In this document: positions 12,675 to 52,644 of the stretch, piece after piece
How the letters are laid out: every line of letters begins with the position of its first letter
Numbering within the stretch: the stretch's first letter is position 1
Assembly (NCBI GenBank): GCA_003427395.1
Contig: BFEA01000042.1
Coordinates: forward strand, 4,018,439-4,071,082
Origin: Chara braunii
Lineage: Eukaryota > Plantae > Charophyceae
DNA length: 52,644 nt
Direction of reading: 5' to 3'
Program-made: the position numbers and the translations under genes
The notes under the pieces: generated by a model
Database searches by the model: none
Told to the model about the DNA's origin: nothing
What the model saw: only the letters and a program-made list of their open reading frames with translations

Positions 12675-12727
<53 letters not shown>

Positions 12728-12922
12728 CGGAGAGAGGAGTGAGGAGACGGTTCTTCCTTCCTAGTAGGGGTGAACTTTGTGTGCTGCGCTCTTTAATAAA
12801 AAGGGACGGCGTCTCCGAAGGAAAAAAAAAAAAGAAAAAAAGAAGGAAATCTCTGCGTTCATCTGACCTGCCCGTCTTTCATTTTCGCTTTTGTGTCACA
12901 CAGTCTGTGTTCAGCCTCTTGA

Positions 12923-12969
12923 TGCTTGATGAATAGGTGAAACTCCGACGGAACAGTCTGTCACAGGCA
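12923..12969 (+). ncRNA. Hammerhead-ribozyme-like motif (degenerate)
   Basis: TGC-TTGATGA-ATAGG-TGAAACT-CCGAC-GGAAC-AGTCT-GTC-ACAGGCA. Confidence 0.5.
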
Positions 12970-13050
12970 CTCGTTCGTTGTGTCCTCGTCTCCCACTCTG
13001 CCTACGGTTCACTGGAAAGTTCTCTGTGGCAATATATAGCGCTCAGCCGC

Positions 13051-13095
13051 CTGATGAGTCAGTGGAACTCCAACAAAACAGTTGGTTACAGCCCC
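13051..13095 (+). ncRNA. Hammerhead-ribozyme-like motif (degenerate, CpG-decayed)
   Basis: CTGATGA-GTCAG-TGGAACT-CCAAC-AAAAC-AGTTG-GTT-ACAGCCCC. Confidence 0.5.
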
Positions 13096-13140
13096 TGCTG
13101 TTTTCTTGTCTTTTTTTGAAGTTCTTCACTTTTTCTTTTT

Positions 13141-13196
13141 TCATCCTTGTGTGGGGGCCATGCTAATCTTCTCTGTATCGGTCCAATTTTAACGGT
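13141..13196 (-). pseudogene. U6: U6 snRNA fragment (central part, truncated at both ends)
   Basis: Reverse complement CCGTTAAAATTGGACCGATACAGAGAAGATTAGCATGGCCCCCACACAAGGATGA, followed by A-rich sequence. Confidence 0.85.
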
Positions 13197-13979
13197 TGTC
13201 CGGACCCAAAAAAAAAAAAAAAAGTTAAAAAAACAGAATTCCAAAAAAATCTGAAAGCAATATATGTTATGCAGAAGAATAAACTAAACAACATTTGCCT
13301 CAACAATACATCCAAATTCTTTACCAAATTTGAAATAAAAATCAAATACTAAAAATAAATAATAATAATGAAAATTAGAAAAAATAAAACGAGCGAGCAC
13401 GTTTTTGACACTGCCATCTTTGGCGACTTTTCATTTTGTTTTGGCTGTGACAAATGCCATGAAAACTTATATATGTGTATCTTACATAATGGAGAATCTA
13501 CAAATAAAAGTTTGAAAAAATAATATTTTTTTTCATGCCCCGAAATAAAGGAAAAACAAACAAAAAATGGAAAGAGAAAAAAAAACAAATTAGTGAGTGG
13601 GCAAGCAAGTTTTGACACCACCATCTTTGATGATTTTTCTTTTTTTTTTGGCTGAACAGAATGGCTTCAAAAATTAAGAGGGAGATACTTACATCACAAA
13701 GAACTCACCAAAAAAAATCAAATATAGCTTGTTTTATAGCCTGAAAAATCCTGAAAATCCTGATGCATGAAAAAAAGTTAAAAAAACACTTTTGCCTTGC
13801 TGTTTTATATCTTTTGAAGGTTGGTTTTTCAACTTTGTTTTTGTACATAGTTAGTATGGTCTTCACTCTCTGAATGGGTGCCAAGTTTGGTTAAAATGAC
13901 CCTTGGGGTTTTCTTATAAATGGCCTGACAAGTGGTCTGAAAATTGAGGCCTCCGGTAACCGTCTCTCGAAATCCTTAA
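13192..13979. mobile_element. AT-rich putative non-autonomous DNA transposon with short imperfect TIRs
   Basis: ACGGTTGTCCGGA at the left end versus TCCGGTAACCGT near the right end; TTAA near both ends; internal duplication of GAGC..GTTTTGACAC.(G/A)CCATCTTTG. Confidence 0.35.
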
Positions 13980-14663
13980 AAAAAAGTGTGTTACACTCCT
14001 CTACCCTTTTTTTTTTTTTTTTTTTTTTTAATCAGAATGGTTGAACATCGCCCTTCTACCCTTTGGGGGACAAATTAGTAATTACGATTTGGGATCTGGA
14101 AAGCAAAGCAATGAACCTGGCCAGAGGGCCGTCATGATGCAGACAGAAATCATTCCAAAAAATCCATCAGAGCAAGTTGTTGCCACATTTTGGTAATTCT
14201 GCTGATAGGGCCCGGAAGTTTCATCCTGTTTTTCTGTTTGTTTGTTTTTTTGTTTTTTGAAGGTTTCATCATGTGAATGCTAAAGAAAAAGGAAATAAAA
14301 AAATTATTAAAATTCTGAAGATTCAGTGAAGAAGTTAAAAGAACACAAAAATAGTTCTTGGAACAACAGAGGCTCAATTTGCTAGATAGTATATCTTGTT
14401 GTGCCAGTAAAAAAGAAAACTTGCAGGTTGCAAAACTTGCAATCATAGCTGTGTGAGTGGGTGGATGACAGATCCAGGAGACATGGTGTGTTTCCTAGCT
14501 GTCCATTCAAACTCTGTGTCTTTCCCTTCCTTCCTTTTTCCTTTCCCTTTCTCTTCGTCTCGTTGATTTTTTGGGTCGTTGATGCCTGCGATTCGCATGG
14601 TCGTTGCCAGAGAAACCCTCTTTCCATTGTTTTCAAGTCGTTGGAGAATACCTGGGGAAGTAA

Positions 14664-14667
<4 letters not shown>

Positions 14668-14725
<58 letters not shown>

Positions 14726-14726
14726 N

Positions 14727-14788
<62 letters not shown>

Positions 14789-14790
14789 CG
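14668..14790. repeat. (CT)n/(GT)n microsatellite
   Basis: Seen directly. Confidence 0.95.
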
Positions 14791-15118
14791 TGAGTGCCAC
14801 CGCTGCACTTTGCATGCAGTTGTTTCTATGGCCTTTCCTTGTGTGTCAGTGTCCTGATCTCTTGCGCCCTACCTCCTCGGGAACCCAATGTATGGATGCC
14901 CAAGTAATTAGAGGAAGTCTGATGGCCTTGATTTTCTTGTTTTGCTTGAAGGTTTCAGCATATAGCCAGATCTTTTTTTTTTCCTTCGAACTCCATGGAT
15001 GATCGTGCATTTGCTTGCTTTGGATATAATTGCACATTGATTGATGGATTTTTCACGTAAAGCAGACCCCGGACGAGGTATATTCGGATTCGTTGTTCGA
15101 TGTTCATCAGGGTAATTG

Positions 15119-15128
15119 GTGTGTGTGC

Positions 15129-15209
<81 letters not shown>
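15119..15209. repeat. (GT)n microsatellite
   Basis: Seen directly. Confidence 0.95.
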
Positions 15210-15211
<2 letters not shown>

Positions 15212-15786
15212 GGGTTGTGTGCATGTATGCATGCCATGGCACACACTCTCTTCCAGGCAGGGCTCAGGTGAGAAGACCGGCATGGCAAGAGCCATGCTGC
15301 AGGAGGGGATACCTTATGATGATACGGGAACACTACTTTGAGAGGGCGTGGCCAAAACGTCCTGTGTGGAATACTTTGTAGGCGCGGGACAGACACATGC
15401 AATAGCTGAAGGCAGCAAAAACTATGCTGGAGCATCTATGGCGTGAATGCCGCTGCGGTATGACCCAGAATATAGACAATCAGTACATCACAGACAAACA
15501 CACAAGAAGGGGGAACGAAACAACAACGAAGCCAGGGGCAGGGAGGCAATGCGGTGAGCCTGTCAAATGGCAAGCCTCAACAAGGCACATAGACTGGAGG
15601 GCATGGAGGGAAGGGGGGAAGCAAATGCAAATAAAGGTTAGGACAGCACATAGACTGGAGGGAAAGGGGGAGATGGGAGGGTAGGCAACACACAAGAACA
15701 CAGGTCAGGGAAGAGACCACCACCAACAACAAAGAAAAAAAAGTACGACCAAGCCGGGAAACAAAAGAGCAAAAAAAATAAAAACT

Positions 15787-23063: not shown

Positions 23064-24484
23064 TCACTGTGCAATCATCCACTCCGCCAACGCGTCCCTC
23101 AGTATCAGCGCATCCCCCATCGAAGACTCCATGCATACTGGCCTCAATGGTTGATGCATCCCCAGATCCACTCTACGACGCACGCCGTCTGGACCCACCT
23201 CCCACAACAGATTGTCGTCAAACGGGACGCCGGCGTCGATGAGTATGTTGTGGATGATGCAGACGGCGACGAATTGTTGCGGCAAGCTGTGCATGTTGCA
23301 CTTGTGGGTGCGGAGGAACAACCTCCACATTCCCTTCAGTCTGCCATACGCCCTCTCCACTGCTCCCCTGGCCGTCTTCTGTTTGTTGTCGAAGCGTGCC
23401 TCCGTCGGGTGTTGCGCGAGACCGCCGTAAGGGACGACTACCATTCCGACTGCGGATAACCGTTGTCACCGAGCAAGTAGCCATTAGTCCGCACACCGAA
23501 AGGCAACATCACATGCGGCCCAGTGAAAAGTTGTCCTGACTCCGCGCGCACCCACAAACTCGACAGGTTCAGCATCCTCATGTCATGCACACTCCCCGGA
23601 TAACCGACGAAGACGTCCAGCACACGCAAGTTCATGTCGACCACCACTTGCGCCTGCACGGAGAATCGACGTCTCCTGTCGTAGTAGTCCTCACCGTTGG
23701 CGTTCGCGGGTTTGTCGATGTAGGTATGTGTGCATTCGATGCACCCATAGCAGTTCGGAAACCCCTTGTCAGCGAAGGCGCGCAACACGACCGCCTTCTG
23801 CAAACCTGTGGGCCATGATATCTTGTCGGGGTAAGCAGTCAGCAAAGTTGCCGTGACGTCACGCACCGTCGTGATGCCGGAAGCCCTCCCGATGCCGAAG
23901 CTACACGTCCCGCTGTCGTACATCTCCCCCGTGGCCCACCTGTACAGTGCATAGGCAATGATGTGGTCTGGCTGCAAAGGCACCCTGTAGAACGTCACAC
24001 GGCGTTGAAGGAGTGGGGAAAGAGTCTCCGCGATCTCGCAGAAAACACGAGGCGACATTCGAAGCTTCTCCTTGAAGTAATCATCCGTTCCGTCATCACA
24101 TTGCCGCAGATCCTCCCAAGTGCCGCCCGTTCGCCGCTTCACCCACCACCGTGGAGTCGCCCTTGGAAACCCCTCGCACCCCATCGCGTAGCAGACCTCC
24201 AGCACCTCATCGGGAATGGCAGCCACATCCAAGCACTGCCCAGTCGTCGGAAGCGCCAACAGCTTGCGCCGTGCACGAACATCCGCTTTGAAGTTCGCGT
24301 CATTGCTCGCCATCTGGCAGCGGAAGAGGACGACATTAACCCCCGCAGCAATAGCCATCCTCTCCGCCGTCGTCAAACCGCCGCGCCCTGCCCCGCCGTC
24401 AACGTCCATCCCAGACGCCGCTTCCGATGACATCACGTCAATCAAACCACTGGACTCCATAAACACGGCCACGCGGAAGATCAC
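23064..24484 (-). pseudogene. PIF/Harbinger (DDE_Tnp_4, HARBI1-like) transposase, frameshifted
   Basis: Motifs LRMSPRVF, GCIECTH (canonical GxIDxTH with D>E), GYPGSVHD, LLGDNGYP, R..VERAYGRLKGMWR. Frameshift at ~23440 joins ORFs 23438-24484 and 23064-23444. Confidence 0.92.
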
Positions 24485-26689: not shown

Positions 26690-27030
26690 TACAGGGGCAT
26701 ATAGACAAGTTGCTGAGGGCCCCGTAGAGGTGTGCAAGAGATGACAGGTCCAGTTGGTGAGTGGGGCATTTTGCAAAGTTTCACTACTGCCGTAGGGGCA
26801 TGTTGCCACACACATGCATTTTAGGGGTACCAGGGGCATCAGGGGCATTTCAACAATTTCCCCCTTTTTTTTCTGTAGTCTTTTGGATAGCAAAAGATGA
26901 CAGGTCCAATTGGCAGGTGGGGTATTTTGCAAAGTTTCATTACTCTCATAGGGGCATTTCGCCATATACATGCATTTGAGCGGTATCTGACAAAATAGAC
27001 CAACTTTAAGGGGCATTGCAACAAATTTCC
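26690..27030. repeat. Imperfect ~155-bp tandem duplication
   Basis: AGATGACAGGTCCA.TTGG...GTGGGG.ATTTTGCAAAGTTTCA occurs twice. Confidence 0.6.
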
Positions 27031-27854
27031 CCTCTTTGTTCGTTTTTTTCTTCTTCAGTCTTTCTGATCGGGCCATTCCCGTATTTTGCTTCATTTCTGG
27101 TAGAATATCATATTCAGAAAGCCAAATCTGAGAACACATACATGACGCCCACCTTTGGCCCACCTTGTGATGCGGGAAAGCTATAAATTCCCACGCAAGT
27201 ACAAAGGGGTTGCCAAGGGGGACAGTCCCAACTTTTCCCTTGCGGTAGTGCGTGGGTTCATTGTGGCATAACTGGCCCCCACATGGACAGTGGAGCTCTC
27301 CTCTAAGAGAGGAATGGGCGTATCTCAGTTGGTGCACCAATGAACTGTTGAAACTGGGACGTGAGTTCAAATCCGGCAAGAAAAATACGTCAGAGTGCCC
27401 ATGCCACCCTGTCAGCAGCTCCGGTTGGGCCCAAAGTGGTGGGTGGTGGGTATTGGGCAACATCAATTTGCGTTGGCCAAAACGGTCCCGGGCCGAGGTA
27501 CCACACGGGAGGCTGAAATCGTGCTGACTGCCCGAAATGGCAGGGGCTAAGGCCAGAGTGAATCGCGCTGACTGCCCGAAATGGCACGGGCCAAGGTACC
27601 GTGTGACCGGTAGGTAGGCCAGTTTGAAATCCGGGTGAGAGCCTGAAACGGCCACGTGCCAAGGTAACATACCGGATGGGCTAGGCCCAAATCGTGCCGA
27701 CTGGCCGAAATGCCCACGGGCCAAGGGGCCATGGTACCGGAGGCCAAGTCCCACTACCAGTAGTGGAGGTCTCGTTCCTGCTGCCGGTGCCTGTGTGACA
27801 GTGCGCGATGCAGCACGGCAGATGAGTGACAGCAGGCGGAGGAAAAAGGAAACA

Positions 27855-27865
27855 AGAGAGAGAGA

Positions 27866-27943
<78 letters not shown>

Positions 27944-27984
27944 NNNNNNNNNNNNNNNNNNNNNNNNNNNNNNNNNNNNNNNNN

Positions 27985-28042
<58 letters not shown>
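27855..28042. repeat. (GA)n microsatellite with gap
   Basis: Seen directly. Confidence 0.95.
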
Positions 28043-28043
<1 letters not shown>

Positions 28044-28298
28044 ACTCCGAATCCGTAATGATGGGACAGACTGAAAATGGGCCAATGTCAGTGGCTGGGA
28101 ACCAGTAGGCCGCTCGGACCTTGTATAGCTACTGCAGGAAATGAGCTTACCACAGCCTTGCGTAAGAGCAGCTATGGAAAATCAGACTGGTGGTCAATTG
28201 AAAATCAGCCTCTGTAGCCCTATTTGGGTCGGGCTACAGGTGAGGACCTCTCTACTACACCTGTGAGCAAAAAATGTGGCCAATGGAAAATCACCTTG

Positions 28299-28394
28299 CA
28301 CAGGTCTTGTCCAAATAAAAAGGGAAAATGGCGTACCATAGATGATGCCAGATTGAATAGGAGAGTCTTGGAGTTGGGGGCCGCAGGCCCACAC
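28299..28394 (-). repeat. Split direct repeat B2
   Basis: CACAGGTCTTGTCC...ATGCCAGATTGAATAGGAG...GGCCGCAGGCCCACAC, repeated at 29043-29128. Confidence 0.9.
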
Positions 28395-28418
28395 TCAGCG
28401 GGAAAATCGAGGGCGGGC

Positions 28419-29041
28419 AGGACTGCTTCGCCAAAATTGGCGAAGGAGAAATGACTCTCCTCAGACCGGCTGACGAAGTGACTTGACTGGTCTGCAGGTT
28501 TGCTTACGCGCTGAGTGCTGCTGGAGGGCGCGCGAGCGAGGGAGGATCCAGAGAGATCCAGTAGATCCAGCAGGTCCAACAACCTGCCTCAACTGCTGCG
28601 CTGCCGGTGACTTATACTGTCACGGGCAGTGGGAGCAGTGTCGTCCGGGCAGGCGACGTCCAAATGCATCCCGGGTGAGTTCCGCGAACCTGGTCCTATT
28701 TCAGACCCGACTGAATGTCCTTCGTCCTGCTGGCGGTCCCATGCCCGAGTCCAATGCCCTGTAACTGTAGGAGGTCGGTGTCGTGGTCCAACCGCTGAAA
28801 TTGTAGTCTTCCGAGGAATGCGCGTCGTAGATGTCCTGAATCCAAGGCCGAGAGTGTCGGTCGTAGGCGAGCCAATGGTGCCAATGGAATGCAAGTCGTA
28901 GATGTCCGAAATTCAGGGCAGCGAAGAAATGACGAAGACCGAGGGAATGGTTGACGTGTCTAAACTGTGGGCAACCGTTGGAATGCAGTGATGGTGACCT
29001 AAGGTAAGTGTAGTAATCGAAAAGGCCGTAGGACAGTTGCT
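28419..29041 (-). repeat. Split direct repeat A2
   Basis: About 620 bp, colinear with 39377-40001. Confidence 0.93.
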
Positions 29042-29042
29042 C

Positions 29043-29128
29043 CACAGGTCTTGTCCGAATAGAAAAGAAAAATGTCATACCATAGAGGATGCCAGATTGA
29101 ATAGGAGTTGGAGGCCGCAGGCCCACAC
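29043..29128 (-). repeat. Split direct repeat B1
   Basis: Copy of 28299-28394 that directly abuts A2. Confidence 0.9.
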
Positions 29129-29205
29129 ACCTCCTAACCGTCCCATATCCCCCCATGGTCCCGCAAGTGACATAGTCGTCTTGCAGGGAATGATGGAATG
29201 AGCGG

Positions 29206-30248
29206 ATGAGCGATGGAAGCTGGCGGCAGAAGAGGGACACTCCCGAGCACGGAGGAGATTACGAGAGTGGATTGGAATGGTGCAGCAAAGTGATAGATGA
29301 ATATGGTTGTGGAGAGCCATGGCGGAATGGAATGCGGAGGTTGCTACTTGGATTGAATGAATGGTTGGAGAGAAATAATGTTGGTCGTGATTGCATGGGG
29401 TGCATCGATCTGGATATCATGTCATTTATGAGTAGTCAATGGTTGATTGAGGTGGAGGGTCATTGTCGAACAGCTGATAATGAGAGGACTCCTATTGTAT
29501 CGCCATCCACTGTTGATGCAGCAATAGATTGTTTGAGTAATAGTTTCCGATTGCTGGGGAGGGAGAACGATGATCCTTGCCAGAGCAGTCGAGCGAAAGT
29601 TTTCCGCAAGGGGTATCGTGAGTATGCATTACAAAGGGGAGTAATAGAGCGCATCCCTTGCGATGGGAGAAATTGGGAATTGTTATAAGTTATAAAAGGA
29701 GTAAGGTTCGGGTACTGAAGGGAGTTACGGAGGCTGAAGCTTATAGGGATGCTGCAATCTTTCTATATCTATGGGAGAGTTGGCAACGTTGTGGTGAAGG
29801 TTTGCGGTTGCAATTTTTGAAAATTAATGTGGAGGAGAGAACAGTGTGTCCTGGATACACGAAGACCGATCGACAAGGCGGAAGATTTCTGATAAGGTTG
29901 TGTGAGCCCGAAGAGGGGGAAGAGACATTTTTAGGTATTCCAAGTGAGTTAATAGTAGTGTATGAGGGGGTAGGACAGGATATCAGAGTGTGGTACTTAT
30001 TTCGTGGTCGACGTGGTGACGGGCCATTAGGTGGGAGTGGATTTAACAAGCGGATTGAAAAGTGGTTTGGGGAGGCTGGAGTGTATGAAGGGGAAACCGG
30101 ACATAGTTTTCGGATAGGTGGGGTTCAGGCCGGTATTGAGGAAGGATGGAGTCTGGGGGAGATGATGCGTCAAGGGACTAAGAAGAGTGTGGAGACGTTT
30201 ATGTGATATGGTTATGGGATGAAACGAGGTTGGAAAAGGAAGGGTGAT
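29206..30248 (+). pseudogene. Tyrosine recombinase of the YR retrotransposon (frameshift and premature stop)
   Basis: N-terminal domain in ORF 29206-29688. Catalytic domain in ORF 29658-30206 with RDAAIF...WQRCGE (R), TKTDR (K), GHSFRIGG (HxxR) and ETFM*YG, where a TGA stop sits immediately before the catalytic Tyr. Confidence 0.9.
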
Positions 30249-30273
30249 AGTTAGGTTTTGAAGAAAAAAACTC

Positions 30274-32162
30274 TTAGACCGAAGACCGCTGGGTTGGGGC
30301 AGGAGGTGAGGACTCTTGGGCTAGGGATGCAAGAGAAAGGGGATTGGGGAATCTTAAAAGTCCAGAGGATGCGCTGCTGCGAAAGTCTTGGAAACCAAGT
30401 GGGTTTGGGTGAGTCAGGTAAGATGAGGAGGTAGTGGGCAGGGGAAAGCTCTGCACGGGAGATGATTGAGTTGATGAGGGATGTCGGGGGGAAGATCCAT
30501 CTGTAGGGGTTTTTCGGTAGTAAGTCCCAACTAGAGAGAGTGCTTCGATATTAAATGCGTGACTAGACCAAGTTCTGGAGATTAATAGCGAGCAAACGTG
30601 GTGGTAGTCAGAGGCAAAGAGATCGATTGTTGGGACGTCCAAGATGTCAAAGATAGATTTCAGGACATGCGAAGCAATGCCCCAATCCGAGTTATCTTCA
30701 GATTTAGAGACGAGGTCCTCGTGTTGGTTGAGTTCGCGTGGTATCCAGATGCGGTAGAGGAGGGTATCGCATGTGATTAGTATTGAGGCAATATTTCTAA
30801 GCCAAGGGTTGAAGAGTGGGTCTGAGGAGCGCATGTTGGTAAGCAAAAAGGAGACAGCCTGACTATCGAGGTGTAGTCTGATTGATGTGGAAAACAAGAG
30901 GTTCTTGTGATTATTAAAAAGGAAGGTTAATGATTGGAGGACTGCGAAGAGTTCGCGGTGGGTGGAGGAGGTGGTTAGGATTGAAGGGGGAAGACATTCA
31001 TTGAAGATAATCTCATCCTTTTGAAGGGGTTTGGTGATTACTGCAATTTGAGAGGAAGAAGCATCTGATGCAATAAGGAGAGTAGTTTTCCTGGTTATCC
31101 AGAGGCGACCTGGTAAAGAGGGTAGGTGGTGAAGCCACCTGGTTAGGTCAAAGATGAGGGTGTCAGAGGTGGGTATGATGGAGTCCCAATTGGCGGGTGA
31201 GATTGAGTCATAGAGAGAAGATAAATAGAGGGGGACAGGGAGGAAAGCTTTAGAGAGGGAAGTCAGTTTTCCTGCTAGTCTGGCCAATGATCTACTCGTA
31301 ACTGGGGTAGAGGAGACTTCGTTTATAAGATTCAAAATTTTATGAGCCTTGTCATCTGACACTTTTATACTTTTGTCATGGGAGTCGAAGATGAATCCGA
31401 GAAACTTAATGGATTGTGAGTGTAAAAAAAAACATTTATTGATGCTGAGGAAAAAAACAAGGTTGTGAAGAAGCGCGACATAATTGAATGTTTGCCATAT
31501 GAGAGAGAGGATGGATGAATTTGCTAGTGCGGAGTCATCTATGTAGGAAGAGATAAGGATATTTTTAATTCTAAGTTTTGTCATGATTTCTTGCATTACG
31601 ATGATGAAAATCCAACAAGCGGAAGAGACGCCAAGTAGAGTGTGTTGAAGTGATAGTTGATGTCATTCCATTTGAAAGCAAAATAGGGGCGGTGTTCAGG
31701 ACGAATGAGAATGTGGTAGTAATCATTCTTTATGTCGAAGCAAGTGAGAATGTCTTGAAAGGAAGAACCGAGGAGGGGGGATATGAAGTCATCAAAGAAT
31801 TCATAGTGAAAATTAGAAAAGGAAAGTAAGAGATTGACTAATCTAACGTCAAGAATGAATCTTGTCTTAGAAGAACTTTCAATAGCGAATAAAGGGTTTG
31901 TAACGACTGGGGAGGGGGAATACTCTATGATCTTTCAGTCGAATAGTTTGGAGACTGAGGAGGATATAAAGTTTTCATGGTGGGGAAGGAGGTTGTGATT
32001 GGGGATAGAGGTTTTCAGAGGGAATTGAAGTTTGAGGATTCTTTTGAATTGGGAGGCGGAGTAAACACCCTTGACCATTCGTCTAACTTCCATAATCTTT
32101 GCGGGTGGAATGTAGTTGGTTCCTACGAAGTTTAATCTGACCCCGTGCTTGATCCATTGCAA
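30274..32162 (-). pseudogene. pol of the YR retrotransposon: RT, RNase H and methyltransferase-like domain, frameshifted
   Basis: RT: FDIKNDYYHILI..YFAFKWNDINYHFNT (~31640-31745), YIDD, IKFLGF. RNase H: IASDAS, STHRELFAV, HLDSQAV, WIPRELNQHEDLVSK. MT-like: SDWGI...PTIDLFAS. Confidence 0.9.
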
Positions 32163-32382
32163 GACTGAGTGAGAGAAACGTCTGGAGGAAGAAGAGAGTA
32201 GGAGGTTTCAATTAGAGAAGGATGAAGTGGTGGATGCTGCGAAGAAGTCATCTGGTGATCTAAGCCAGGAGGAGGGTTCCTGGAGTGCAAAGATTGTTGT
32301 GCGAAGATCAGTGATTGAAGGGGGGTTGGAAAGATTTTGAAGCATTTGAGGTACAGAAGAGATGCAGAAGGGAGGGGAATTG

Positions 32383-33451
32383 CTAAGAGGGGGTGCTGAA
32401 GTTATCCTTGGTATCGTTAACTGGCTTTGAATTGTTGGAGTCAAGGCGGAATTTTTTTGAAGCCATGTTGTAATCGTAACCCTTGTTGTCATCATCATGA
32501 TGCTTGCGAGTTGTGGAGCGTTTGTCTTCCGTCTTTGAGCTTTCGCCCTTCTTCTGGTAGGTGGTTTTGCCCTTCGAATCGTCCTTGGTCGCCCTGCAAG
32601 ATATAAGACGATAAGTGAGAATGCCCGTATACGCAAAAGGCGTTGACTTTTTAGCAGTCAAGGGCGAGTAGGGAAGTCATCGGGCACAGCCTTTGCTTAC
32701 CTGGCTTCCATCTGCGGTGCTTGGTTAAAACAGTAATTGAATTCCGCTTCGATAAGTGGCATGACTTCCTCCATTCCTTCACGAGCGGCCTTGATTAGTA
32801 GTGTCTTGGTCTCTTTGGGGATGCGTTTCTCCATTGAGTCCTTGGCTATATAGGCAACACGAGAGACAAAGTCGAGGGCGAAGGTCTTTCCATAAGGATA
32901 GCAGGAATAGTTGAGGTCTACTGCTTTAAATCTGATGAAGGATAGGATTTACCAGAAATAGCAAGGGTTGAAGAAGAGTTTTTTCCAAGCTTTGAGTTCG
33001 TAGTAGGAAGATGGGGATTTGGGGAGCATCTTTTGAGAAATCTCGTGCATGTCTGATGTGAGGTTATAGTAGAGTTCACTAAGGGCTTGACTTTCCTCTT
33101 CTCGTCTAAGTAACTCGTTGTGACCGTATTCATATTTTTTGATGAGTTGCCAGAGTTGGGTTCTAAGTTGATCAAATAGGGTCATAAGATCTGGTGGCGG
33201 GGAAGAGGAGGAGGAATTTGATTTGCAGGTAAGTCCTGAGGGCTGAAGATTGGCCGAAGGAGATGAGGAGCAGGGGAGTGTGGTGGGGGAGGAGGTGGTG
33301 GTGGTGGTGGGAGTTTGATGCTGAAGATGTGGACTCTTTGGACTTGTGAAAACTCCCTTAGTTGCACTGAAAAAATGAGTTCGTCAAATGCGGCTTGAGG
33401 ATTGAGGAATGGAATGATCTTGGTTGGGTTGAAAGTGAAAGGTGGAACCAA
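32383..33451 (-). pseudogene. Putative gag-like ORF remnants of the YR retrotransposon
   Basis: Broken coding-like frames (33182-33451, 32949-33185, 32383-32661) immediately upstream of pol. The call is positional only. Confidence 0.4.
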
Positions 33452-36034
33452 GAAGAGGGCGAGTATGTCCGCGTCGTTGAGGGTTTGAGGGTCATCACAA
33501 AAAAAATACGAGATAATGATTAGGGGAATTGCAAAACATGATCAAAAAATGAGGAGAATCATAAATGCAAAAAATCTCATTGGGAAACAATTTTTGAAAA
33601 GAGGGTTAAGAGAAAAGGCTAAGGTGAATCGTAATATGAAACAGAAGGGGGCAAGTAAAAGTTTATCAAGAACATTGTCCAGAAAATCCATTTTGCAAAT
33701 CCTGCAAACAAAGAGGAACAACAATATGGTTCGTGGTGAAAGTTTTACAAATTGTTGATTTCTTCCACTGGCCGTTCCTTGTTTTCTCTGCTCTCATCAC
33801 CTTTGTTGTCCTTGAATGCTTCTCCTTATTTGCTCTCTTTGTTTTTTTTTTTTTTTTTTGGGGGGGGGATTTGATAGATGAAGGAAAAGAAAGAAGGGCG
33901 AAGTAGTTGTAGAATTGTTTTGCTGCAAGATGAACAAAATATCGGGAACTCTGACTATAGATCCTTTTGCCTTGTGTTTTGCCGTTTTATTTTTTATTTT
34001 TAAGGGGGTGTGTCCTTGTTCTTTACCAGTTTATTGGATATGCATAATTCACTTTTTCCCTTCCTTTTTCCTGCCCTTCTCGTTTCCTTTCGTTGGGTCT
34101 ACATGCTGTGTTTTTGTGCGTTTCTTTTTCTTTGCTCCTTCCTCCTCCCTTTTTTTATTTTTTTTATTTTTTTTTTATTTTTTATTTTTTTTTATCCTTC
34201 GGTATTTTCTGATCCCGCTTTCTCTTCCTTTCTTATTTCTTGTGTTTTTTTTTTTTTTTTTTAAGTGGTTGGATGATATAGTTTGGTGATGATAATGCTG
34301 GGAAGGGTTAGTGAATGCAGATAACGATGCGGTTAGCTCTAGAATGAATGAGTGATAGTAAAACAAAATGTGGGTTAGTTTAGATTCGATTCAGCACAGT
34401 TGTTGGTCGAGCTTTGATAGGAGAGGGAAGGAGTCATCTTATCCTTATCCACTTGCTCCATATCTCCTTTTTTTTTTTTTTTTTTAAATAAGACTTTGCT
34501 GGATTTATTGGTTGGTCTCATCTAGTACTGATAGTTAGTTGGTTAGGTTTGTTGATCCGCCGATTGAAAAGGGGGTTGTAGGTGATTNNNNNNNNNNNNN
34601 NNNNNNNNNNNNNNNNNNNNNNNNNNNNNNNNNNNNNNNNNNNNNNNNNNNNNNNNNNNNNNNNNNNNNNNNNNNNNNNNNNNNNNNNNNNNNNNNNNNN
34701 NNNNNNNNNNNNNNNNNNNNNNNNNNNNNNNNNNNNNNNNNNNNNNNNNNNNNNNNNNNNNNNNNNNNNNNNNNNNNNNNNNNNNNNNNNNNNNNNNNNN
34801 NNNNNNNNNNNNNNNNNNNNNNNNNNNNNNNNNNNNNNNNNNNNNNNNNNNNNNNNNNNNNNNNNNNNNNNNNNNNNNNNNNNNNNNNNNNNNNNNNNNN
34901 NNNNNNNNNNNNNNNNNNNNNNNNNNNNNNNNNNNNNNNNNNNNNNNNNNNNNNNNNNNNNNNNNNNNNNNNNNNNNNNNNNNNNNNNNNNNNNNNNNNN
35001 NNNNNNNNNNNNNNNNNNNNNNNNNNNNNNNNNNNNNNNNNNNNNNNNNNNNNNNNNNNNNNNNNNNNNNNNNNNNNNNNNNNNNNNNNNNNNNNNNNNN
35101 NNNNNNNNNNNNNNNNNNNNNNNNNNNNNNNNNNNNNNNNNNNNNNNNNNNNNNNNNNNNNNNNNNNNNNNNNNNNNNNNNNNNNNNNNNNNNNNNNNNN
35201 NNNNNNNNNNNNNNNNNNNNNNNNNNNNNNNNNNNNNNNNNNNNNNNNNNNNNNNNNNNNNNNNNNNNNNNNNNNNNNNNNNNNNNNNNNNNNNNNNNNN
35301 NNNNNNNNNNNNNNNNNNNNNNNNNNNNNNNNNNNNNNNNNNNNNNNNNNNNNNNNNNNNNNNNNNNNNNNNNNNNNNNNNNNNNNNNNNNNNNNNNNNN
35401 NNNNNNNNNNNNNNNNNNNNNNNNNNNNNNNNNNNNNNNNNNNNNNNNNNNNNNNNNNNNNNNNNNNNNNNNNNNNNNNNNNNNNNNNNNNNNNNNNNNN
35501 NNNNNNNNNNNNNNNNNNNNNNNNNNNNNNNNNNNNNNNNNNNNNNNNNNNNNNNNGCTTGCTGTTTTTTCGTGCGTTTCTTGTTTGCGGCCCCCCCCCG
35601 CTTTCCTCCTCTCTCCCTTTTTTTTTTTTTATAGAGAAAAATTATTGAAATTTTCCTGCCTCTGTTCTTCTGAGTGTCACTGAGGGTGGTAATAGGGTGC
35701 TTCAGGAACAAACCTAAGTACATGTTTGTTTTATATTTAGTTCGACTGAATGTAACGTGTACATGCAGGTAGATTGTCGTGAAGAATCAATGTCGGACAT
35801 TACTTTTGATGTTCTCCTATCCTCCTTCTTTCCCTTTTTTTTTTTTTTTAAGTAATGATTGTGATTACTATTTAGAGATCGGTGATGAATATTCGTCGTC
35901 CTTTTGCGTGAGGAGGGAATGACAAATTAGTTCTTCCTCGATTCGTTAAAGAGTTTGAACGCTCACTTGGGTGTGTTTTGCATATATATGAAGATAACTC
36001 TGACGGCGAAAAATGAGGTAGGAAAGCAAAAATG

Positions 36035-37125
36035 ATAGTTTCGTCAAGGTTGAAGGGTGATCGACTAATCGATAAAAAAAGTGGTGAAGGTTCTTCAAAC
36101 ATCGGATTATGATGAAGGAAGTGATTGGTTGCGCGATCAGACGCAAGCGGTAAATGAATAATCGTAGTAGCAGTTTAGACCTTCGCCGCTTGCGGTGATC
36201 GACCTTTCTTAGCCGTGGTATCCCCTCTGTTCTCTTATTTCCCCCCCCCCCTTTTTTTTTTTGAAGGCAAAGCAAACAAGATGGGGAGTGGTTTTGGTCA
36301 AAAATTGAGGGGTGATCGACTAATCGATTATAAAGGGGTGAAGGTTCCTCATACATCTGATTAAGATGAGGGGAATGATTGGTTGCGTGATCAGACGCAA
36401 GCGGTGAAGGAATAATCGTACTAGCGATTTAGACCTTCGTCGTTTGCGGTGATCGACATTTCTTCAATGGTGGTATCCTCCCTAAGGCTTTTTTTTTTTT
36501 TTTGTTTTTTTTTTTTGTTTAAGGCAATGCAAACAAGATGGGGAGTGGTGAGTGACAGTTTCGTCAAGGATTGAGGGGAGATTGAGTAATCGACTTTAAA
36601 GGGGGTGAAGGTTCTTTACACATCAGATTATCATGAAGGGAGTGATTGATTTGCAATCGACAGACCCAAACGGTGAAGAAATAATCCTACCAGTGAATTA
36701 GACCTTTGCCGTTTGCGGTGATCGACCTTCTTTCAAGAGTGGTATCTTTTTTTTTTTTTTTTTTTTTTAAGGAAATGCAAAGAAGGTAGGAAGTGGTGGG
36801 TGAAGCTTAAAGACGAAGCCGATTAAGTAGGTGTATTATGTCATAGTCTGATTAAGGATATTGGATGCATGCAAATCCATAGTTTTTCAAAGAATAAGGA
36901 AATGATGAATTAAGCGACTATTAAAGAGATAAAAGTGCTTGATACTTGAAACTATCATGAGGAGAGTGATTGGTAGCGCGATCATCAGACGGAAGCAGCG
37001 AGGGAGTAGTTGACTTAGCAATTAGTCCTTCGCCGGTTTCGCTGATCAATTTATTTCTTGTGTGGGGTGTTTTTTTTTTTTTTTTTTATTTTATGGAATT
37101 GCAACAGAGGTAGGGAAGTGGTTGT
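36035..37125. repeat. ~260-bp tandem repeat (3 clear units plus 1 degenerate) inside the YR element
   Basis: GTGATTGGTTGCG.GATCAGACGCAAGCGGT...TAGACCTTCG.CG.TTGCGGTGATCGAC recurs at ~36121, ~36376, ~36642 and ~36966. Confidence 0.85.
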
Positions 37126-38262
37126 AGAGACTTGGAGGGCAAAATTGATTAAGTAGTTGCATGATTATGGCGTAAACTGTCTCTTGAGAGGGAGGATTAA
37201 GGAGATTGAATTCATTGCAAGATGAGGTAGTTGATGAACAACTGATGAATTAATCCTTCATCCTTTCCGTTTACTATGTACCTCCCCACTTTTTTTTTTT
37301 TTTTTTTTTTTTTAACGATTACAAAGATGGAAGAGTAAATTTGTCGTGTGACAAAAGGCAAAGTCGATTATCCTACAAGTTATGACATAACTTGGTTCCT
37401 CAGAGGAAGGGTGAGAGAGATTTTATACATGCAAAATAATCAGAGTTGTTTGGTATTTCAATGTTCGAATGGAAGAATGGAGGAAGGACTGATGGTGCTC
37501 CTTTATTACATTAGGTTTTTTTTTTTTTTTTTTTTTTTTTAAGGTAATTGCAACGAGAAGGAATGGGATAACAATACGTCATGCAACAGAGGAATCAATT
37601 GACTTAAGCTTCCATTAGCTTTCAGACGAGAATGGATTCATGCCGTACAATTATTATTATTCTCGTCGTAACAGTTGTAAAAGCAATTGAAGATCAGACG
37701 GAAAGCCTCCTTGTCCAAGAGGAAGGAATGACTAATGGGATGGTAGGAAGAGGGAATAAGAAGGAGTCTTGAAGAGAAGAAGATAGAAGGTGAGAAGATG
37801 AAGCAGGAGGAGTAGAATTAGAAAAAAGAGGAAGAAAATGTCGAAGGTTCGAAATATGTTTGGTTTCTTTCTACTTCTTGTGGTTTTGGGAGTGGTCGCG
37901 AGTTGAGGATTGGGAGGTGGGGGGTTTAAATGGGGGAGTGCGAAAGGAGGGGTGGGGAATGAGAAGCATGGGTTGCATGGGTGCATGAGCTTCAGGAAGG
38001 GGCGAATCGGGGTCGGAGGCGTAGTCGGAGGTCCTGACTGATCTTCTTCTTCTAGAGGAAGAAGGATTGGAAGATCTTTTGGGCGCCATGGCTATCAATC
38101 TGCTAGTTCCTCGAGGAGGGGGAAGGAGAAGGTTCCCTCCGTGGTCCTAAGGAGAAGCTTGCCGAGCGATTGCGAGGAAGGAAATGTGGCTTGACGTGGG
38201 TCCTGCGGAATTGGATAGAAGTCCGGAAGCTTGTCGCAGATTGCGTTCTTGACGAGCCTAAA

Positions 38263-39192
38263 CTAAGGCCCAGGTCCGGTGGAGATAAGCGCGTGGAGGA
38301 CGAGCTGATTGGAGTCCGTCTTGGTAAGCTTCGTGAAAAAACCTTTGAAGAAGAAGGCGAGTGACAACAAGAATCTCGAGGAGGGCGCCTGAGAGGAGAG
38401 GTGCTCTGCGATGCTCTGTAGTCCTGAAGTGACCCAAAATTTGACAGGTGGCCTTCGCGTGGAGGCTAAGCAGAGGACGAAGCAGTAGAAGGGAATTCGA
38501 AGATCATGCGCATATTCCTCCTTGAAGATATCGAGGTCCAGCCTCGCGCTGTCCCCCTCTGCATCGGTAAGGAAAGAAAGATTTATTGTTCCCACGTAAA
38601 TGAGAGAAGTGATGAGGTTGAAGAAGAAAAAGTGTGAAAGGAGTTCGATTGCTTTCTTCCTTTTTAGGAAGAAGAAAGAACGATCTCCGTTGTGGAAGGT
38701 GGTGAAGGTGGCGCTCTTTGCAAACGCTAGGAGATCATTTATTGTAGCGGTGGAGCTGAATCTCTCGTGGACCGGTCCGTTCTGCAAAGAAATGAAGGAG
38801 GTGGGCAGTACTGGCGGAAGAGCGAAGAGGTGAAGAGGAAGGAGGGAGGCAGTGGGATGATCCAAGACGAAGATGCGGAAGAGACAGTCATCTGCGTGAA
38901 TGAAAGACGGGTTAGTGTGGGTGGACATGGGAGTGATTAGAGCGTTGAATTCGATCGTTAAGGCTTCGTCAGATATTACGGTATCATTCTTGGCTACACG
39001 TGTGGAGGAAAAGAAGGAGTTTAGAAAGAGTTCGTAGATGGGAGGGTTGTCGTGGGCGGGATGGAAGAGAGGAGGATCGGAGTCTAAACAGGAACATTCT
39101 GATATAGGTATGGAGCGGGTGGAGTAGTTGGGAACAACAAAGAGAGGGGAGATTGAGGGCCTGTCGCCAGGACGAGCAGTCGACGCGTTCAT
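38263..39192 (-). CDS. Hypothetical 309-aa ORF at the 5' end of the YR retrotransposon, function unknown
   Basis: Uninterrupted non-repetitive ORF starting ~185 bp downstream of repeat A1, same strand as pol. No domain recognised. Confidence 0.55.
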   Translation of the reverse strand: MNASTARPGDRPSISPLFVVPNYSTRSIPISECSCLDSDPPLFHPAHDNPPIYELFLNSFFSSTRVAKNDTVISDEALTIEFNALITPMSTHTNPSFIHADDCLFRIFVLDHPTASLLPLHLFALPPVLPTSFISLQNGPVHERFSSTATINDLLAFAKSATFTTFHNGDRSFFFLKRKKAIELLSHFFFFNLITSLIYVGTINLSFLTDAEGDSARLDLDIFKEEYAHDLRIPFYCFVLCLASTRRPPVKFWVTSGLQSIAEHLSSQAPSSRFLLSLAFFFKGFFTKLTKTDSNQLVLHALISTGPGP

Positions 39193-39376
39193 TGCTGATT
39201 TCTTCAGGGGGAAGAAGACGAAGGACTGACCTTTGACGGATGACCGACACAGACGCTGAGAATGACACGAACTGACCGTGGGACGACCTGCTGAAAGACC
39301 GGTTCCTGTGGCTGATTGCTGGGTTAACTGAAGGAGGACCTGATGAGAGGACAGAGGTCCCGAAGGCTGTAAGTTG

Positions 39377-40001
39377 AGGACAGCCCTACGCCAAAATTGG
39401 CGAAGGAGAAATCACTCTCCTCAGATCGGCTGGCAAAGTGACTTGATTGGTCTGCAGGCTTGCTTACGCGCTGGGTGCTGCTGGAGGGCGCGTGAGCGAG
39501 GGAGGATCCAGAGAGATCCAGCAGATCTAGTAGGTCCAACAACCTGCCTCGACTGCTGCACTGCCGGTGACTTATACTGTCGCGGGCAGTGGGAGCAGTG
39601 CCGTCCGGGCCGGCGACGTCCAGATGCATTCCGGGTGAGTTCCGCGAACCTGGTCCTATTTCAGACCCGACTGAATGTCCTTCGTCCCGCTGGTGGTCCC
39701 ATGTCGGAGTCCAATGCCCTGTAGCTGTAGGAGGTCAGTGTCGTGGTCCAACCGCTGAAATTGTAGTCTTCTGAGGAACACGCGTCGTAGATGTCCTGAA
39801 TCCAAGGCCGAGAGTGTCGGTCGTAGGCGAGCCAATGGTGTCAATGGAATGCAAGTCGTAGATGTCCGAAATCCAGGGCAGCGAAGAAATGACGAAGACC
39901 GAGGGAACGGTTGACGTATCTAAACTGTGGGCAACCGTTGGAATGCAGTGATCGTGACCTAAGGTAAGTGTAGTAATCGAAAAGGCCGTAGGACAGTTGC
40001 T
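39377..40001 (-). repeat. Split direct repeat A1 (5' terminus of the YR element)
   Basis: Colinear copy of 28419-29041; homology stops after GGACAGTTGCT. Confidence 0.93.
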
Positions 40002-40155
40002 ATGGGCGCCCTTACCTCAGATTTTTGCTTCACGAAAAGACCTGCCAGCCTACCTATGCACCCTACGATTTCTCTTCATCAGCGGTGAGAAACACATGTA
40101 GCACACAACGGAGAGCTCCCCTACCCCAGAACAAAATCTGGGCTGCAGACCCAAG

Positions 40156-40301
40156 AGCCAAGCTCAGTGGGTACACCCATGAGCTGTTGAAAATACAGAC
40201 CCGTGTTCTAATCCAGATGATGGAACTTGATGAGTAATACCAACTATTTCTGAATTGCATGGGCCCGGTCAGCTCAAAGATGATATCTCAAGGCCTGGCC
40301 T
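40156..40301 (+). mobile_element. tRNA-derived SINE, family A
   Basis: GCCAAGCTCAGTGGGTACACCC...CTGTTGAAAATACAGACCCGTGTTCTAATCCAGATG...GATATCTCAAGGCC. Confidence 0.7.
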
Positions 40302-40471
40302 GCTGGGACTTGGCCCCGTCCACTACGGTAATCCCTATCCCTTTCAGACCGGTGGTGCAGATTCCCAGTTCTTTTCTTCTTTCCTTTTTCTTTTTCTTTT
40401 TTTTCCTTTTTTTTTTAATTCCCAGGTCTTGTCGACCGCCAGTAAGCTCTGCGACAAGCACTGCGCTCCCG

Positions 40472-40545
40472 ACCGGTAGCTCAGTTGGTAAAACACCCCT
40501 GAACTGAATGAAGTGTTGAAATACAGACCCACTGAGTTCGACCCC
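40472..40545 (+). mobile_element. tRNA-derived SINE family A, head only
   Basis: TAGCTCAGTTGGTAAAACACCCC...TGTTGAAATACAGACCC..GAGTTCGACCC. Confidence 0.6.
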
Positions 40546-41082
40546 CCCCCCACTGGTGGAAGCTGTCGTCAATGAAACACTACACCATATCTCACTTTAG
40601 GGCAAGGCCCCACTTGCACGGATTAAGAGATATTCTGGCCGTCGATCTTTGCTATCTACGGTCAGTATCGCTTTATTCGTGTAAGTGGGACCTAGCCCCC
40701 GGTCAGGTCCGTGATCATATTTTAAGGCCGTCACCATTTTAAGAAAGAAAGGAAAGGACGCGCTGCGACGGGAGCCAAGCCCCACCCCACCCCACAGCAC
40801 ACCACACCGCTGTGTTTTATTTACGGCTTGGACAACTCTCTGCAAAACAGTCGTATGGTGTTGTGTTTGCATGGGCAGCGCCGCTTTCGCGCTCTTGCTT
40901 GGACTTGGACGTGGTCTTGGATGGGGCAGTTTTAATCAAACTACAACTGATTTGGTTCTCTTCGAAGCGGGGGGTAAGGCTGAGAGTAATTGTGTAGGAG
41001 TCACAAAAGCGCATCGGAATCGGATTAGTCGCGTGGCTGTTGATCTCTGCCAGTCGACAAGAAATCCGCTGCTCTACCGGTA

Positions 41083-41121
<39 letters not shown>

Positions 41122-41170
41122 CACGCACACACATACAGACAGATGTGAGTCGCAAACATACAGACAGATG

Positions 41171-41210
41171 TGAGTCGGTGAAAGTGCGACGAAACAGTCT
41201 GGCACAGGCA
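41171..41210 (+). ncRNA. Hammerhead-ribozyme-like motif (5'-eroded)
   Basis: TGA-GTCGG-TGAAAGT-GCGAC-GAAAC-AGTCT-GGC-ACAGGCA. Confidence 0.5.
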
Positions 41211-41340
41211 TGCGTATTTTGATTGTATAGCGGATATGGCACAACACGCACGCACACACACATACACACTCATGCTTTTTTTTTCTGGAGGTGTGTATAA
41301 CGAACATGACAACACACACTTCCCGCTGCTCTGCCGCTAC

Positions 41341-41395
<55 letters not shown>

Positions 41396-41505
41396 ACCCA
41401 CACACCCACATATGATTTTTTTTGTAGAGTTGTCTACAGCGAGCATGAGAACTCTCTTTCTCTCTCTCTCTCTCGCCCTCCCTGTCTCCGTCTCTCCCTC
41501 TCTCC

Positions 41506-41540
<35 letters not shown>

Positions 41541-50807: not shown

Positions 50808-52644
50808 TCAGTCCAAGGCGGGACCTTTACCTTTCTTGTCACGCTCATAGGCTCTAACTATGTCGGGAGCAGTCTCTAGAAGTTCTGCTTTCGTGAACCA
50901 GCGGTCGTCTTCCGGTTCCTGATAGGCAAACCGGACTTTATATTGTTTCTGGGGACGACCTCTACCTCCTGTCCTAAACACATCCTCTTCTACAATGCCC
51001 TCGATGTCATAGCTCCCATCCATATCCGGTGGGATCATGGATCTCCTGGAAGGGAACTGTTGACTAGTGACACACGGTAGTAGCTTCGAAGCATGGAACA
51101 CAGGGTATGTGTGGAGGTGTGCTGGAATCTCAATGCTGTAGGACGGTCCATCCTCTCCGCCCTTGACTTCTAGAACCGGCCACGGTCCTCTATATGCAGG
51201 CAGTAACTTCTGCGAGATGTTTTCTTCCGGTGCAAACTCTTTTGCCTTGACCCAGACTAAGTCGCCTACTTGAAACTGTGATGGGCGACGGTGCTTGTTA
51301 GCCTGCTCTATCATTCTGTGCTGGGCCTTCCGAAGGTTCTCAGTGGCTAACTCCTTTTCGTGCTGTAGTCCAAACTCCCTGGTACCGGGCGGTAATCTGT
51401 GAATCCGATCCCGGTTCAGTCCTTCGAACGGTCCGCGCGGTTTAAAGGACTTGTGCTATTCATTGGGAGTGCGGCAGGTGGATAGATGCATGCTGTTGTT
51501 GTACGGAGTAGCGACCTTGGGCAACATCTCATCCCAGTTGATCTGATCTGGTATAATATACATGCGCAAAACTTGTTGTAGGATCTTGTTCATCTGTTCT
51601 GTCTGACCGTTAGTCTCTGGGTGACGGCCGGACGACATTAACAACTTAGATCCGTAGACTCTCATGAGTTCTTGCCAGTTCTGGCTGGTGAAACGACTAT
51701 CTCTATCACTAACTATTGACAATGGGATTCCATTCTCACTAACCCAAAACTCAAAGAACTTTTGTATTACTAAATTTGTACGTGCCTCTGCAGGCAAAGA
51801 AACAAAAATTGCATACTTACTAAAACGGTCGACTATGACCATGACTTGGCTCTTACCATATCTGCTCTTGACTTGTGTGTCCATGAAGTCTATGGACACT
51901 GAGTCTCCCGGCTGATCCGGAATAGGCAAGGGTCTGAGAAGACCTAGGGGCGCGCGTGTAGTAGATTTGTTTCGCTGGCATACTTTACAACTGCGGACAT
52001 ACTCTATGCAGTCGTTCTTCATCCCTGGCCATGTGTACGCACGCATCAGATTGGTTAACGTCTTTTGCCAACCGAAGTGTCCCTCAGTATCGTGACATTC
52101 CCCTAGAATTAGACTACGAATCTCTTCGCTATTGGAAACACACAGGCGGTCAATCACATTAGTCTTCTCAAACAGCAACCCGTCTGTAGTGCGGTAATCT
52201 GGTTCGGTCTCTGGGGCCTCTCTAACTCTCTTTAGGAGGTCGCTATAGATAGGGTCCTGCGTATACGCTTGTTTCACTTTCTCCTGCAGGTCTCATCCTA
52301 TATCCAGATAATGTACTACGGCTCCAAAGTAGTCTGATCTCCTACTTAGGGCATCCGCCACTACATTGTACTTGCCCTTCACTAGCTTGAGCTCAAAGTC
52401 GAAACGGTCTATCTCTGCGGCCCACCTGGTCAACTTAGGTGTCATCTTGGCCTGGGTCTTCAACCATCTAAGTGTTTCATGGTCGGAGTAGACTTTGAAG
52501 TGCCTCCCAAGCAGGTAGTGCTTCCAATGGTCTAAAGCCTGCATGAGGGCGTAGAGTTCTCTTTCGTACGTGGAGGTAGCGACTTTCTCACAAGGCATCC
52601 TCGCGGACATGAACTCTACGGGTCTATAGCCATTGCCGTCATCT
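50808..52644 (-). mobile_element. Ty3/Gypsy (chromovirus-type) pol 3' part: RNase H, integrase, chromodomain; two in-frame stops
   Basis: RNase H: TYERELYAL, YSDHETL, NVVADALSR. Integrase: H-H-C-C zinc finger, SIDF, VSDRDSRF, HPETNGQTE, and the GPY/F-like YRGPW. Chromodomain: YDIEGIV...YKVRFAYQEPEDDRW. All three ORFs share one frame, split by stops at 52293 and 51456. Confidence 0.95.

Follow-up and report, generated by a model that had tools for sequence, protein, structure and literature searches.

The stretch of DNA analysed here, called the window, comprises 52,644 nucleotides of the charophyte Chara braunii (contig BFEA01000042.1, positions 4,018,439 to 4,071,082 of the forward strand). 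Its positions 28299-40001 hold two pairs of repeats that enclose a gene, pol, for reverse transcriptase (RT), RNase H (RH) and a methyltransferase (MT) and, on the opposite strand, a gene for a tyrosine recombinase (YR). We interpret this region as a PAT-like retrotransposon of the DIRS order, that is, one with split direct repeats, which was inserted long ago and has since been inactivated, and we put the probability of this reading at about 0.85. The features that carry it are, in the direction in which pol is read:

39386..40001, minus strand: A1, the 5′ terminal repeat, 94.6% identical to 28426-29041; the similarity ends at 40001, where the flank begins
30274..32174, minus strand: pol (RT, RNase H and Dam-like methyltransferase), broken; aligns colinearly with relatives over all domains
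29206..30206, plus strand: tyrosine recombinase, inverted and convergent with pol; Pfam Phage_integrase at E 1.8e-4 and alignment with intact recombinases
29043..29129, minus strand: B1, inner copy of the 3′ repeat, directly beside A2; found by repeat search, self-BLAST and MAFFT
28426..29041, minus strand: A2, internal copy of the 5′ repeat; found by self-BLAST and alignment
28299..28395, minus strand: B2, the 3′ terminal repeat, placed by MAFFT; a 30-bp spacer (28396-28425) parts it from A2

Comparison of 27000-41500 against the whole window by self-BLAST and repeat finding yielded only two non-trivial repeat pairs, the rest being microsatellite or internal array. The two copies of repeat A align over 616 bp without an indel (E = 0), and repeat B has a core of 65 bp (28299-28363 and 29043-29107; 89% identity, E 1e-16) that MAFFT widened to about 90 bp (28299-28395 and 29043-29129), including a 10-bp indel. 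Along the minus strand, A1 (40001>39386) is followed by about 10.2 kb of internal sequence, B1 (29129>29043), one base (29042), A2 (29041>28426), the spacer and B2 (28395>28299). This arrangement, A1 ... B1-A2-B2, is a split direct repeat: since B1 abuts A2, the internal B|A junction is identical to that which the two ends of the element would form if joined, which is the definition of the term and a mark of the PAT-like group. An earlier, sequence-only reading of the window had proposed both repeats, with coordinates off by 1-9 bases, and a self-comparison as the way to check them; the comparison recovers the pairs and the order A1-B1-A2-B2. The DIRS order is further characterized by the absence of a target-site duplication, and none was seen here, no repeat being common to the bases that flank 40001 and 28299, which for a single copy is weak evidence. 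Outside the element, a long (GA)n tract lies to the left (27855-28042) and (CT)n/(CA)n to the right (41066-41540), about 260 bp and 1.1 kb beyond its ends and in inverted orientation; no similarity of these tracts beyond simple repeats was found.

The pol gene is read in three pieces (32174-31938, 31934 to ~31638, and ~31638 to 30274), with an in-frame stop (31937-31935) after the first and a frameshift near 31638 after the second. Aligned with full-length relatives, all three remain colinear through RT motif A, the YIDD motif (31551-31534), the RNase H DEDD residues, with a DAS motif at 31074-31057, and a C-terminal domain starting with DLFAS (30627-30610). An exhaustive HMMER search with the 440-amino-acid (aa) pol open reading frame (ORF) returned 1878 homologs, the best at E 7e-38, with 29-31% identity, and no relative above 31% identity was found in the protein databases searched. 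By itself the pol ORF of the window reaches only E 0.06 for RVT_1, and its methyltransferase stretch has no Pfam match of its own; the relatives score with RVT_1 and RVT_3/RT_RNaseH, and two of them (P0001, P0114) with Dam in the aligned stretch. Motifs, alignment and homologs together identify the RT and RNase H as those of the DIRS order, and the alignment of DLFAS with the Dam-positive relatives places a Dam-like methyltransferase after RNase H, as in the PAT-like group; a second conserved methyltransferase motif reads FPLP in the window as against FPP in the relatives.

The recombinase is encoded on the plus strand by two overlapping frames (29206-29688 and 29658-30206), the conserved start codon at 29206 lying 77 bp from B1. 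Alignment with the intact recombinases of five related loci (L001, L002, L003, L004 and L005) indicates that the first Arg, the Lys and the HxxR motif (30102-30122) are conserved. A frameshift lies near 29652, and a stop at 30204-30206 replaces the residue just before the catalytic Tyr, the codon of which follows at 30207-30209. With pol ending at 30274, the two stop codons are 68 bp apart, and the recombinase is inverted relative to pol as in elements of the kangaroo type (Szitenberg et al. 2014). In no ORF of the element does Pfam find a protease or a DDE integrase (rve); it carries a tyrosine recombinase in place of the latter, as is characteristic of the DIRS order.

These genes also bear on the possibility that the region is a long terminal repeat (LTR) retrotransposon with rearranged or solo LTRs. 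Long direct repeats are present, and an ORF for a Gypsy-type integrase does lie elsewhere in the window (51456-52277), but the order A ... B-A-B is not that of LTRs, protease and DDE integrase are missing from the element, and RT-RH is followed by a Dam-like MT and has DIRS-type homologs, which leaves such a reading scarcely tenable. The domains named by the sequence-only reading, namely RT with YIDD, RNase H, an MT-like domain and a tyrosine recombinase, are all present, and its classification as a split-direct-repeat tyrosine-recombinase retrotransposon is borne out by the repeats, the Dam-like MT and the YR. Its text did not mention that the YR lies on the strand opposite the RT or that both pol and YR are broken. 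The description "complete" must be given up, considering the stop and frameshift in pol, the frameshift and the stop before Tyr in YR, an assembly gap and about 6 kb of unexplained 5′ sequence.

The order RT-RH-MT followed by a recombinase on the opposite strand recurs in five out of five relative loci that were fetched. L001 and L002 are Klebsormidium-like Logan contigs (the pol relatives include P0006, 74% identical to the named Klebsormidium nitens protein P0183), L003 is from K. nitens (GAQ84615.1), L004 from Pleodorina starrii (BRXT01000178.1), and L005 is a contig from a metagenome, its protein falling into a cluster with one of Monoraphidium. It could be argued that two chance neighbours have been taken for one element, a Crypton-type DNA transposon, consisting of a recombinase alone, beside an unrelated retroelement, with the repeats belonging to only one of them. 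Separate genes on opposite strands would be in keeping with this. The same tail-to-tail pair recurs, however, in all five relatives, which come from three or more algal genera, both genes lie within the A and B repeats, and inverted recombinases have been described for kangaroo and for a PAT form of Daphnia (PMC4157794); we therefore consider a chance association very improbable.

Two of the relatives have recognizable termini. In L004, A1 (4870-5007) is followed by pol (9899-12367), B1 (13152-13281), A2 (13282-13419), the inverted YR (13547-14563) and B2 (15164-15293), with split direct repeats that are 100% and 98% identical (A 138 bp, B 130 bp). The whole, 4870-15293, is apparently a young kangaroo-type element, and a 2-kb array of 22-bp units (5487-7456) lies behind its A1. 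L005 is arranged like the window, pol and then the inverted YR (9467-11554) lying between A1 (4828-4953) and A2 (11733-11858); the recombinase of this chlorophyte-like element (4828-11918), 695 aa in length, is extended at the N terminus by a long low-complexity stretch. In the streptophyte loci pol and YR are separated by only 68-297 bp. No split repeats were found in the K. nitens locus L003, and in L001 and L002 the contig extends only some 120-130 bp beyond the start of the recombinase; the termini of these three copies could not be placed.

Among described systems, kangaroo of Volvox carteri shares with the window element the DIRS order, the PAT group, split direct repeats, RT-RH-MT followed by an inverted YR, a lack of a zinc-finger Gag and a host of the green lineage (PMC4157794). 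Kangaroo is also reported to carry its internal repeats between MT and YR (PMC4157794). This holds for L004, which serves as our kangaroo-type stand-in, having its RT in the same clade as the window and a tandem array behind A1 as well, although its RT is only about 30% identical to that of the window. In the window, by contrast, B1-A2 (29129-28426) lies beyond the YR start, and only the 68 bp mentioned above separate pol from YR. The element is therefore PAT-like and would work like kangaroo, but it lacks one defining feature of the kangaroo type; the label "kangaroo-like" given by the sequence-only reading thus stands for the inverted YR and falls for the position of B1-A2 (PMC4157794).

The layout of the window and of L005 has a published counterpart: Szitenberg et al. 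(2014, Fig. 1G, PMC4157794) describe a PAT form of Daphnia pulex, called "novel", in which the YR is inverted and the internal repeats directly precede the 3′ terminal repeat rather than lying between MT and YR. The host is an animal, and the likeness is to the published description rather than to a sequence; moreover, such layouts are reported to have arisen repeatedly (Szitenberg et al. 2014, PMC4157794), so that a layout common to the Daphnia form and the window need not mean kinship. The best-scoring pol relatives (E 7e-38 to 1e-26) are the DIRS-type elements of Klebsormidium nitens (GAQ84615.1 and relatives; L001-L003), which have a tight tail-to-tail arrangement of pol and YR, with 125-297 bp between the genes, and a streptophyte algal host. 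They differ in being only 29-31% identical and in showing no depletion of G on one strand. PAT of Panagrellus and TOC3 of Chlamydomonas also have split direct repeats and RT-RH-MT with a YR (PMC4157794), but their recombinase is oriented as pol, and Pat1-like elements have a zinc-finger Gag. DIRS-1 of Dictyostelium belongs to the same order and has the same set of enzymes, with inverted terminal repeats and an internal complementary region instead of split direct repeats. Ngaro elements share split direct repeats and a tyrosine recombinase yet are without a methyltransferase, whereas pol of the window keeps DLFAS and aligns with Dam-positive relatives.

Phylogenetic analysis of 58 RT-RH-MT rows (IQ-TREE, LG+C20), compiled without curated references for kangaroo, TOC3, PAT, DIRS-1 and Ngaro, places the window RT inside a clade of 45 rows (SH-aLRT 100) as opposed to 13 other DIRS-type rows. 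This clade includes a 14-row Klebsormidium group, the row of Pleodorina, a member of the Volvocaceae, and the row of the Monoraphidium cluster. In the best tree the window is sister to the Klebsormidium group, with a weak support of 78, and a tree with the window forced into the chlorophyte-containing clade is not rejected (p-AU 0.32). The sequence-only reading had named grouping of the RT with LTR elements or LINEs as an outcome that would speak against it; this did not occur, as the RT groups with DIRS-type elements of green algae. The window and the relatives taken together show two positions of the internal B1-A2 junction in one and the same green-lineage RT clade, which should be useful for classification and for the repeat libraries of charophytes.

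The element belongs to a multi-copy family. DNA contigs and RNA reads were compared with 28100-34099 only, and about 600 DNA contigs per run fit over these 6 kb at an identity of at least 88%, most of them 90-95% alike; among them is a paralog with about 90% identity across 29780-31758. For contigs that match the window exactly the word depth is ~10-12, and the summed depth over the genes is 20-50, equal to 2-4 copy-equivalents, rising to 50-300 over A. Over B and its inner flank (28300-28440, 29130-29232) the summed depth is 700-2400, compared with 10-12 for single-copy contigs and 20-50 for the genes, which indicates a module common to far more elements or fragments than the coding part. In run X1 the summed depth steps from 41 (28100-28299) to 1156 (28300-28499), in agreement with the proposed 3′ end at a resolution of 200 bp, and contigs that join B2-like sequence to 29150 onward stem from the surroundings of B1 in other copies. 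Searches for proteins identical to the 440-aa or the 309-aa ORF yielded no second Chara copy. Of 9 and 17 million reads sampled from two oligo-dT RNA runs, only 1 and 8 fitted in part, so that neither the window copy nor its near relatives show any sign of expression. The intact pol and YR frames and the transcription that would characterize an active, "complete" element are accordingly absent from what was found here.

The 5′ half of the element, between A1 and pol, is less readily explained. It contains the following features:

38263..39192, minus strand: an intact ORF of 309 aa in first-ORF position, of no recognizable family; from the ORF list
35557..37575, minus strand: an array of about 8 units of 220-420 bp, each with a terminal poly(A) of 10-25 nt on the sense strand; from TRF, repeat families and unit alignment
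34588..35556, no strand: an assembly gap, a run of 969 N
33816..34587, minus strand: a segment A-rich on the sense strand, with 3 more poly(A)-ended units, left of the gap; from A runs and unit alignment
32200..33450, minus strand: broken frames upstream of RT, by position only a candidate gag-like remnant; from translation

The 309-aa ORF has no Pfam match, no usable Atlas match, a low recognition score and no BLASTP match to the upstream ORFs of the relatives. The frames at 32200-33450 gave no Pfam match, no CCHC motif and no significant match to ORFs of the relatives, and neither Pfam nor BLASTP against those ORFs gave a match for the other ORFs of the 5′ half. No CCHC-like pattern occurs in any sense frame of 32100-39400, in line with the lack of a zinc finger in the Gag of the kangaroo type, although with degenerate frames, part of them in the gap, this is weak evidence. 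Rfam families were absent from 27000-41500 at E up to 0.1, and thus there is no hammerhead. In the array, TRF reports a period of 254 with 2.7 copies and 78% matches, and clear homology, repeating every ~254 bp, links units U3-U7 (36252-37289 and part of U7); the units left of the gap, A runs aside, are weakly similar to those on its right. All told, 33816-37575 comprises at least 11 short tandem units, several of which, viewed on the plus strand, show a polypyrimidine tract with AG, a 25-nt mini-exon with ATG and then GT. Both edges of the gap lie in the sense-strand A-rich sequence of units with terminal A runs of 10-25 nt, and no homology-supported ORF extends to either edge, so that the question of a reading frame across the gap does not arise.

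This segment invites the alternative that the region is a composite, in which a PAT-like core of ~5.8 kb (A1 and 28299-33450) later received one or more insertions of unrelated repeat DNA in 33450-39385, and in which neither the 11.7-kb length nor the cargo would be a property of the family. Such an origin would account for a segment that has no homology to the relatives and no Pfam matches and that consists of a degenerate tandem array of poly(A)-ended units. The composition of the element bears on this question. GC skew has one sign throughout 28-40 kb and flips at both ends of the element; on the pol-sense strand of the internal part (29129-39385) G amounts to 12-16% as against 21-34% C, including the stretch that codes for YR on the other strand, while the A repeats are less biased (G 23-24%). 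The relatives from Klebsormidium and Pleodorina and L005 lack such a bias (G 24-35%). Throughout the 5′ segment sense-strand G is 15-16%, with the same sign of skew as the rest of the element, and each of the 11 long T runs in 33842-37540 belongs to the plus strand, i.e. the A runs are oriented as pol. This shared bias and direction favour one co-evolved unit. In addition, a 2-kb tandem array likewise separates A1 from the ORFs in the Pleodorina relative, and neither a duplicated target site nor a second set of termini was seen. A composite origin is hence possible, but we find it doubtful. With regard to the G-poor sense strand itself, recent hypermutation of the APOBEC kind was considered and rejected, as family copies differ symmetrically from one another (G>A 80, A>G 73, C>T 60, T>C 49) and the changes at the amino-acid level do not follow a simple G-to-A pattern.

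The assembly gap raises another concern, namely that its two sides (around 34588-35556) stem from two copies of one family joined by scaffolding and that no single element of 11.7 kb exists. Repeat arrays such as the one around the gap are places where assemblies break, several copies of the family exist, and the divergence of A1 from A2 (5.4%) is no smaller than that between copies. Orientation, order and strand skew are nevertheless as a single element predicts, scaffold linkage information put both sides together, and nothing positive points to a misjoin, for which reasons we regard this artefact as improbable.

Several points weigh against our interpretation of 28299-40001 as one insertion of a PAT-like element. 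The gap of 969 N allows the 5′ part (A1, the 309-aa ORF and the array) and the 3′ part to be two copies, and the ~6 kb between A1 and the pol region, being without a counterpart in relatives, is perhaps inserted foreign DNA. The sharing of termini with other copies is supported only by the step in depth, in bins of 200 bp. As for the tree, the window row is the longest branch and has a deviant amino-acid make-up, making its exact place unsure, and only 4 rows bear organism names.

Whereas the anatomy, the gene pair and the lesions are observed, the replication cycle outlined here applies to an active member of the family and is drawn from the DIRS/PAT model, reportedly that of Duncan et al. 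2002. Transcription would run from A1 into B2, and the RNA of the element would be reverse-transcribed to cDNA, the incomplete ends of which would be restored and joined with the internal B1-A2 junction as template. Insertion of the product by the recombinase would then take place at the B|A junction and leave no target-site duplication. YR would need an antisense transcript of its own, presumably starting in or beside B1/A2; the 77 bp from B1 to the YR start codon are in the most highly repeated portion of the element. For DIRS-1 it has been demonstrated experimentally that the internal region complementary to both ends is essential for rebuilding them (Malicki et al. 2020, PMC7192593), and the DIRS-1 intermediates are mainly linear single-stranded cDNA (PMC7192593). 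The window copy can no longer go through such a cycle unaided.

DIRS and Ngaro families have been reported from some chlorophytes, C. braunii and K. nitens, and not from Penium or land plants (10.1101/835561), and the presence of such an element in Chara is therefore not new. The sequence-only reading had suggested that the family may be undescribed; this is weakened by the earlier reports of DIRS and Ngaro from both algae (10.1101/835561), but a description at the family level was not found in the literature searched. Likewise, that search, which left the Chara genome paper, Repbase and Dfam outside, gave no description of the structure of Chara or Klebsormidium elements. The statement that DIRS-order elements are missing from seed plants agrees, for land plants in general, with the literature, according to which YR retrotransposons are absent there (10.1101/835561). 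The window copy documents by its anatomy that split-direct-repeat YR retrotransposons with an antisense recombinase persisted in the streptophyte line at least to Charophyceae, and such elements are reported missing from Zygnematophyceae (Penium) and land plants. The window copy, dead and silent, carries no functional weight of its own.

Iyer and Aravind (2012) stated that complete ALOG-type DIRS elements are not known from streptophytes and proposed such elements as the source of ALOG transcription factors (PMC3537659). The recombinase may have an N-terminal DNA-binding domain of the same general kind as plant ALOG proteins. Pfam ALOG_dom gives E 0.027 in the relative L002 only and nothing in the window copy, and a PDB sequence search for the ALOG link found nothing; we see the link as a lead, not a result. 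A further speculation, which we think rather unlikely, is that the Chara and Klebsormidium elements form a streptophyte-specific PAT-like lineage not described at the family level, distinguished by a tight convergent antisense YR and a distal B1-A2, and that this lineage could be the "complete" streptophyte DIRS element in the sense of Iyer and Aravind.

Apart from the element, the window contains an uninterrupted Sec24 ORF of 1225 aa (6344-10021, plus strand) in which the zinc finger, trunk, helical and gelsolin domains of Sec23/24 are recognized. Its best named relative is the Chara braunii protein CBR_g26046, at 82% identity as compared with 61-67% for land-plant Sec24, and identity at this level to a named C. 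braunii paralog supports the charophyte host on which the sequence-only reading had made its argument conditional. As an intronless paralog in an intron-rich genome, this Sec24 may be a retrocopy. Other mobile DNA is represented by a PIF/Harbinger-type DDE transposase at 23438-24484 on the minus strand (DDE_Tnp_4, E 2e-14) and by the Gypsy-type integrase, a fragment with Integrase_H2C2 and rve that is likewise on the minus strand.

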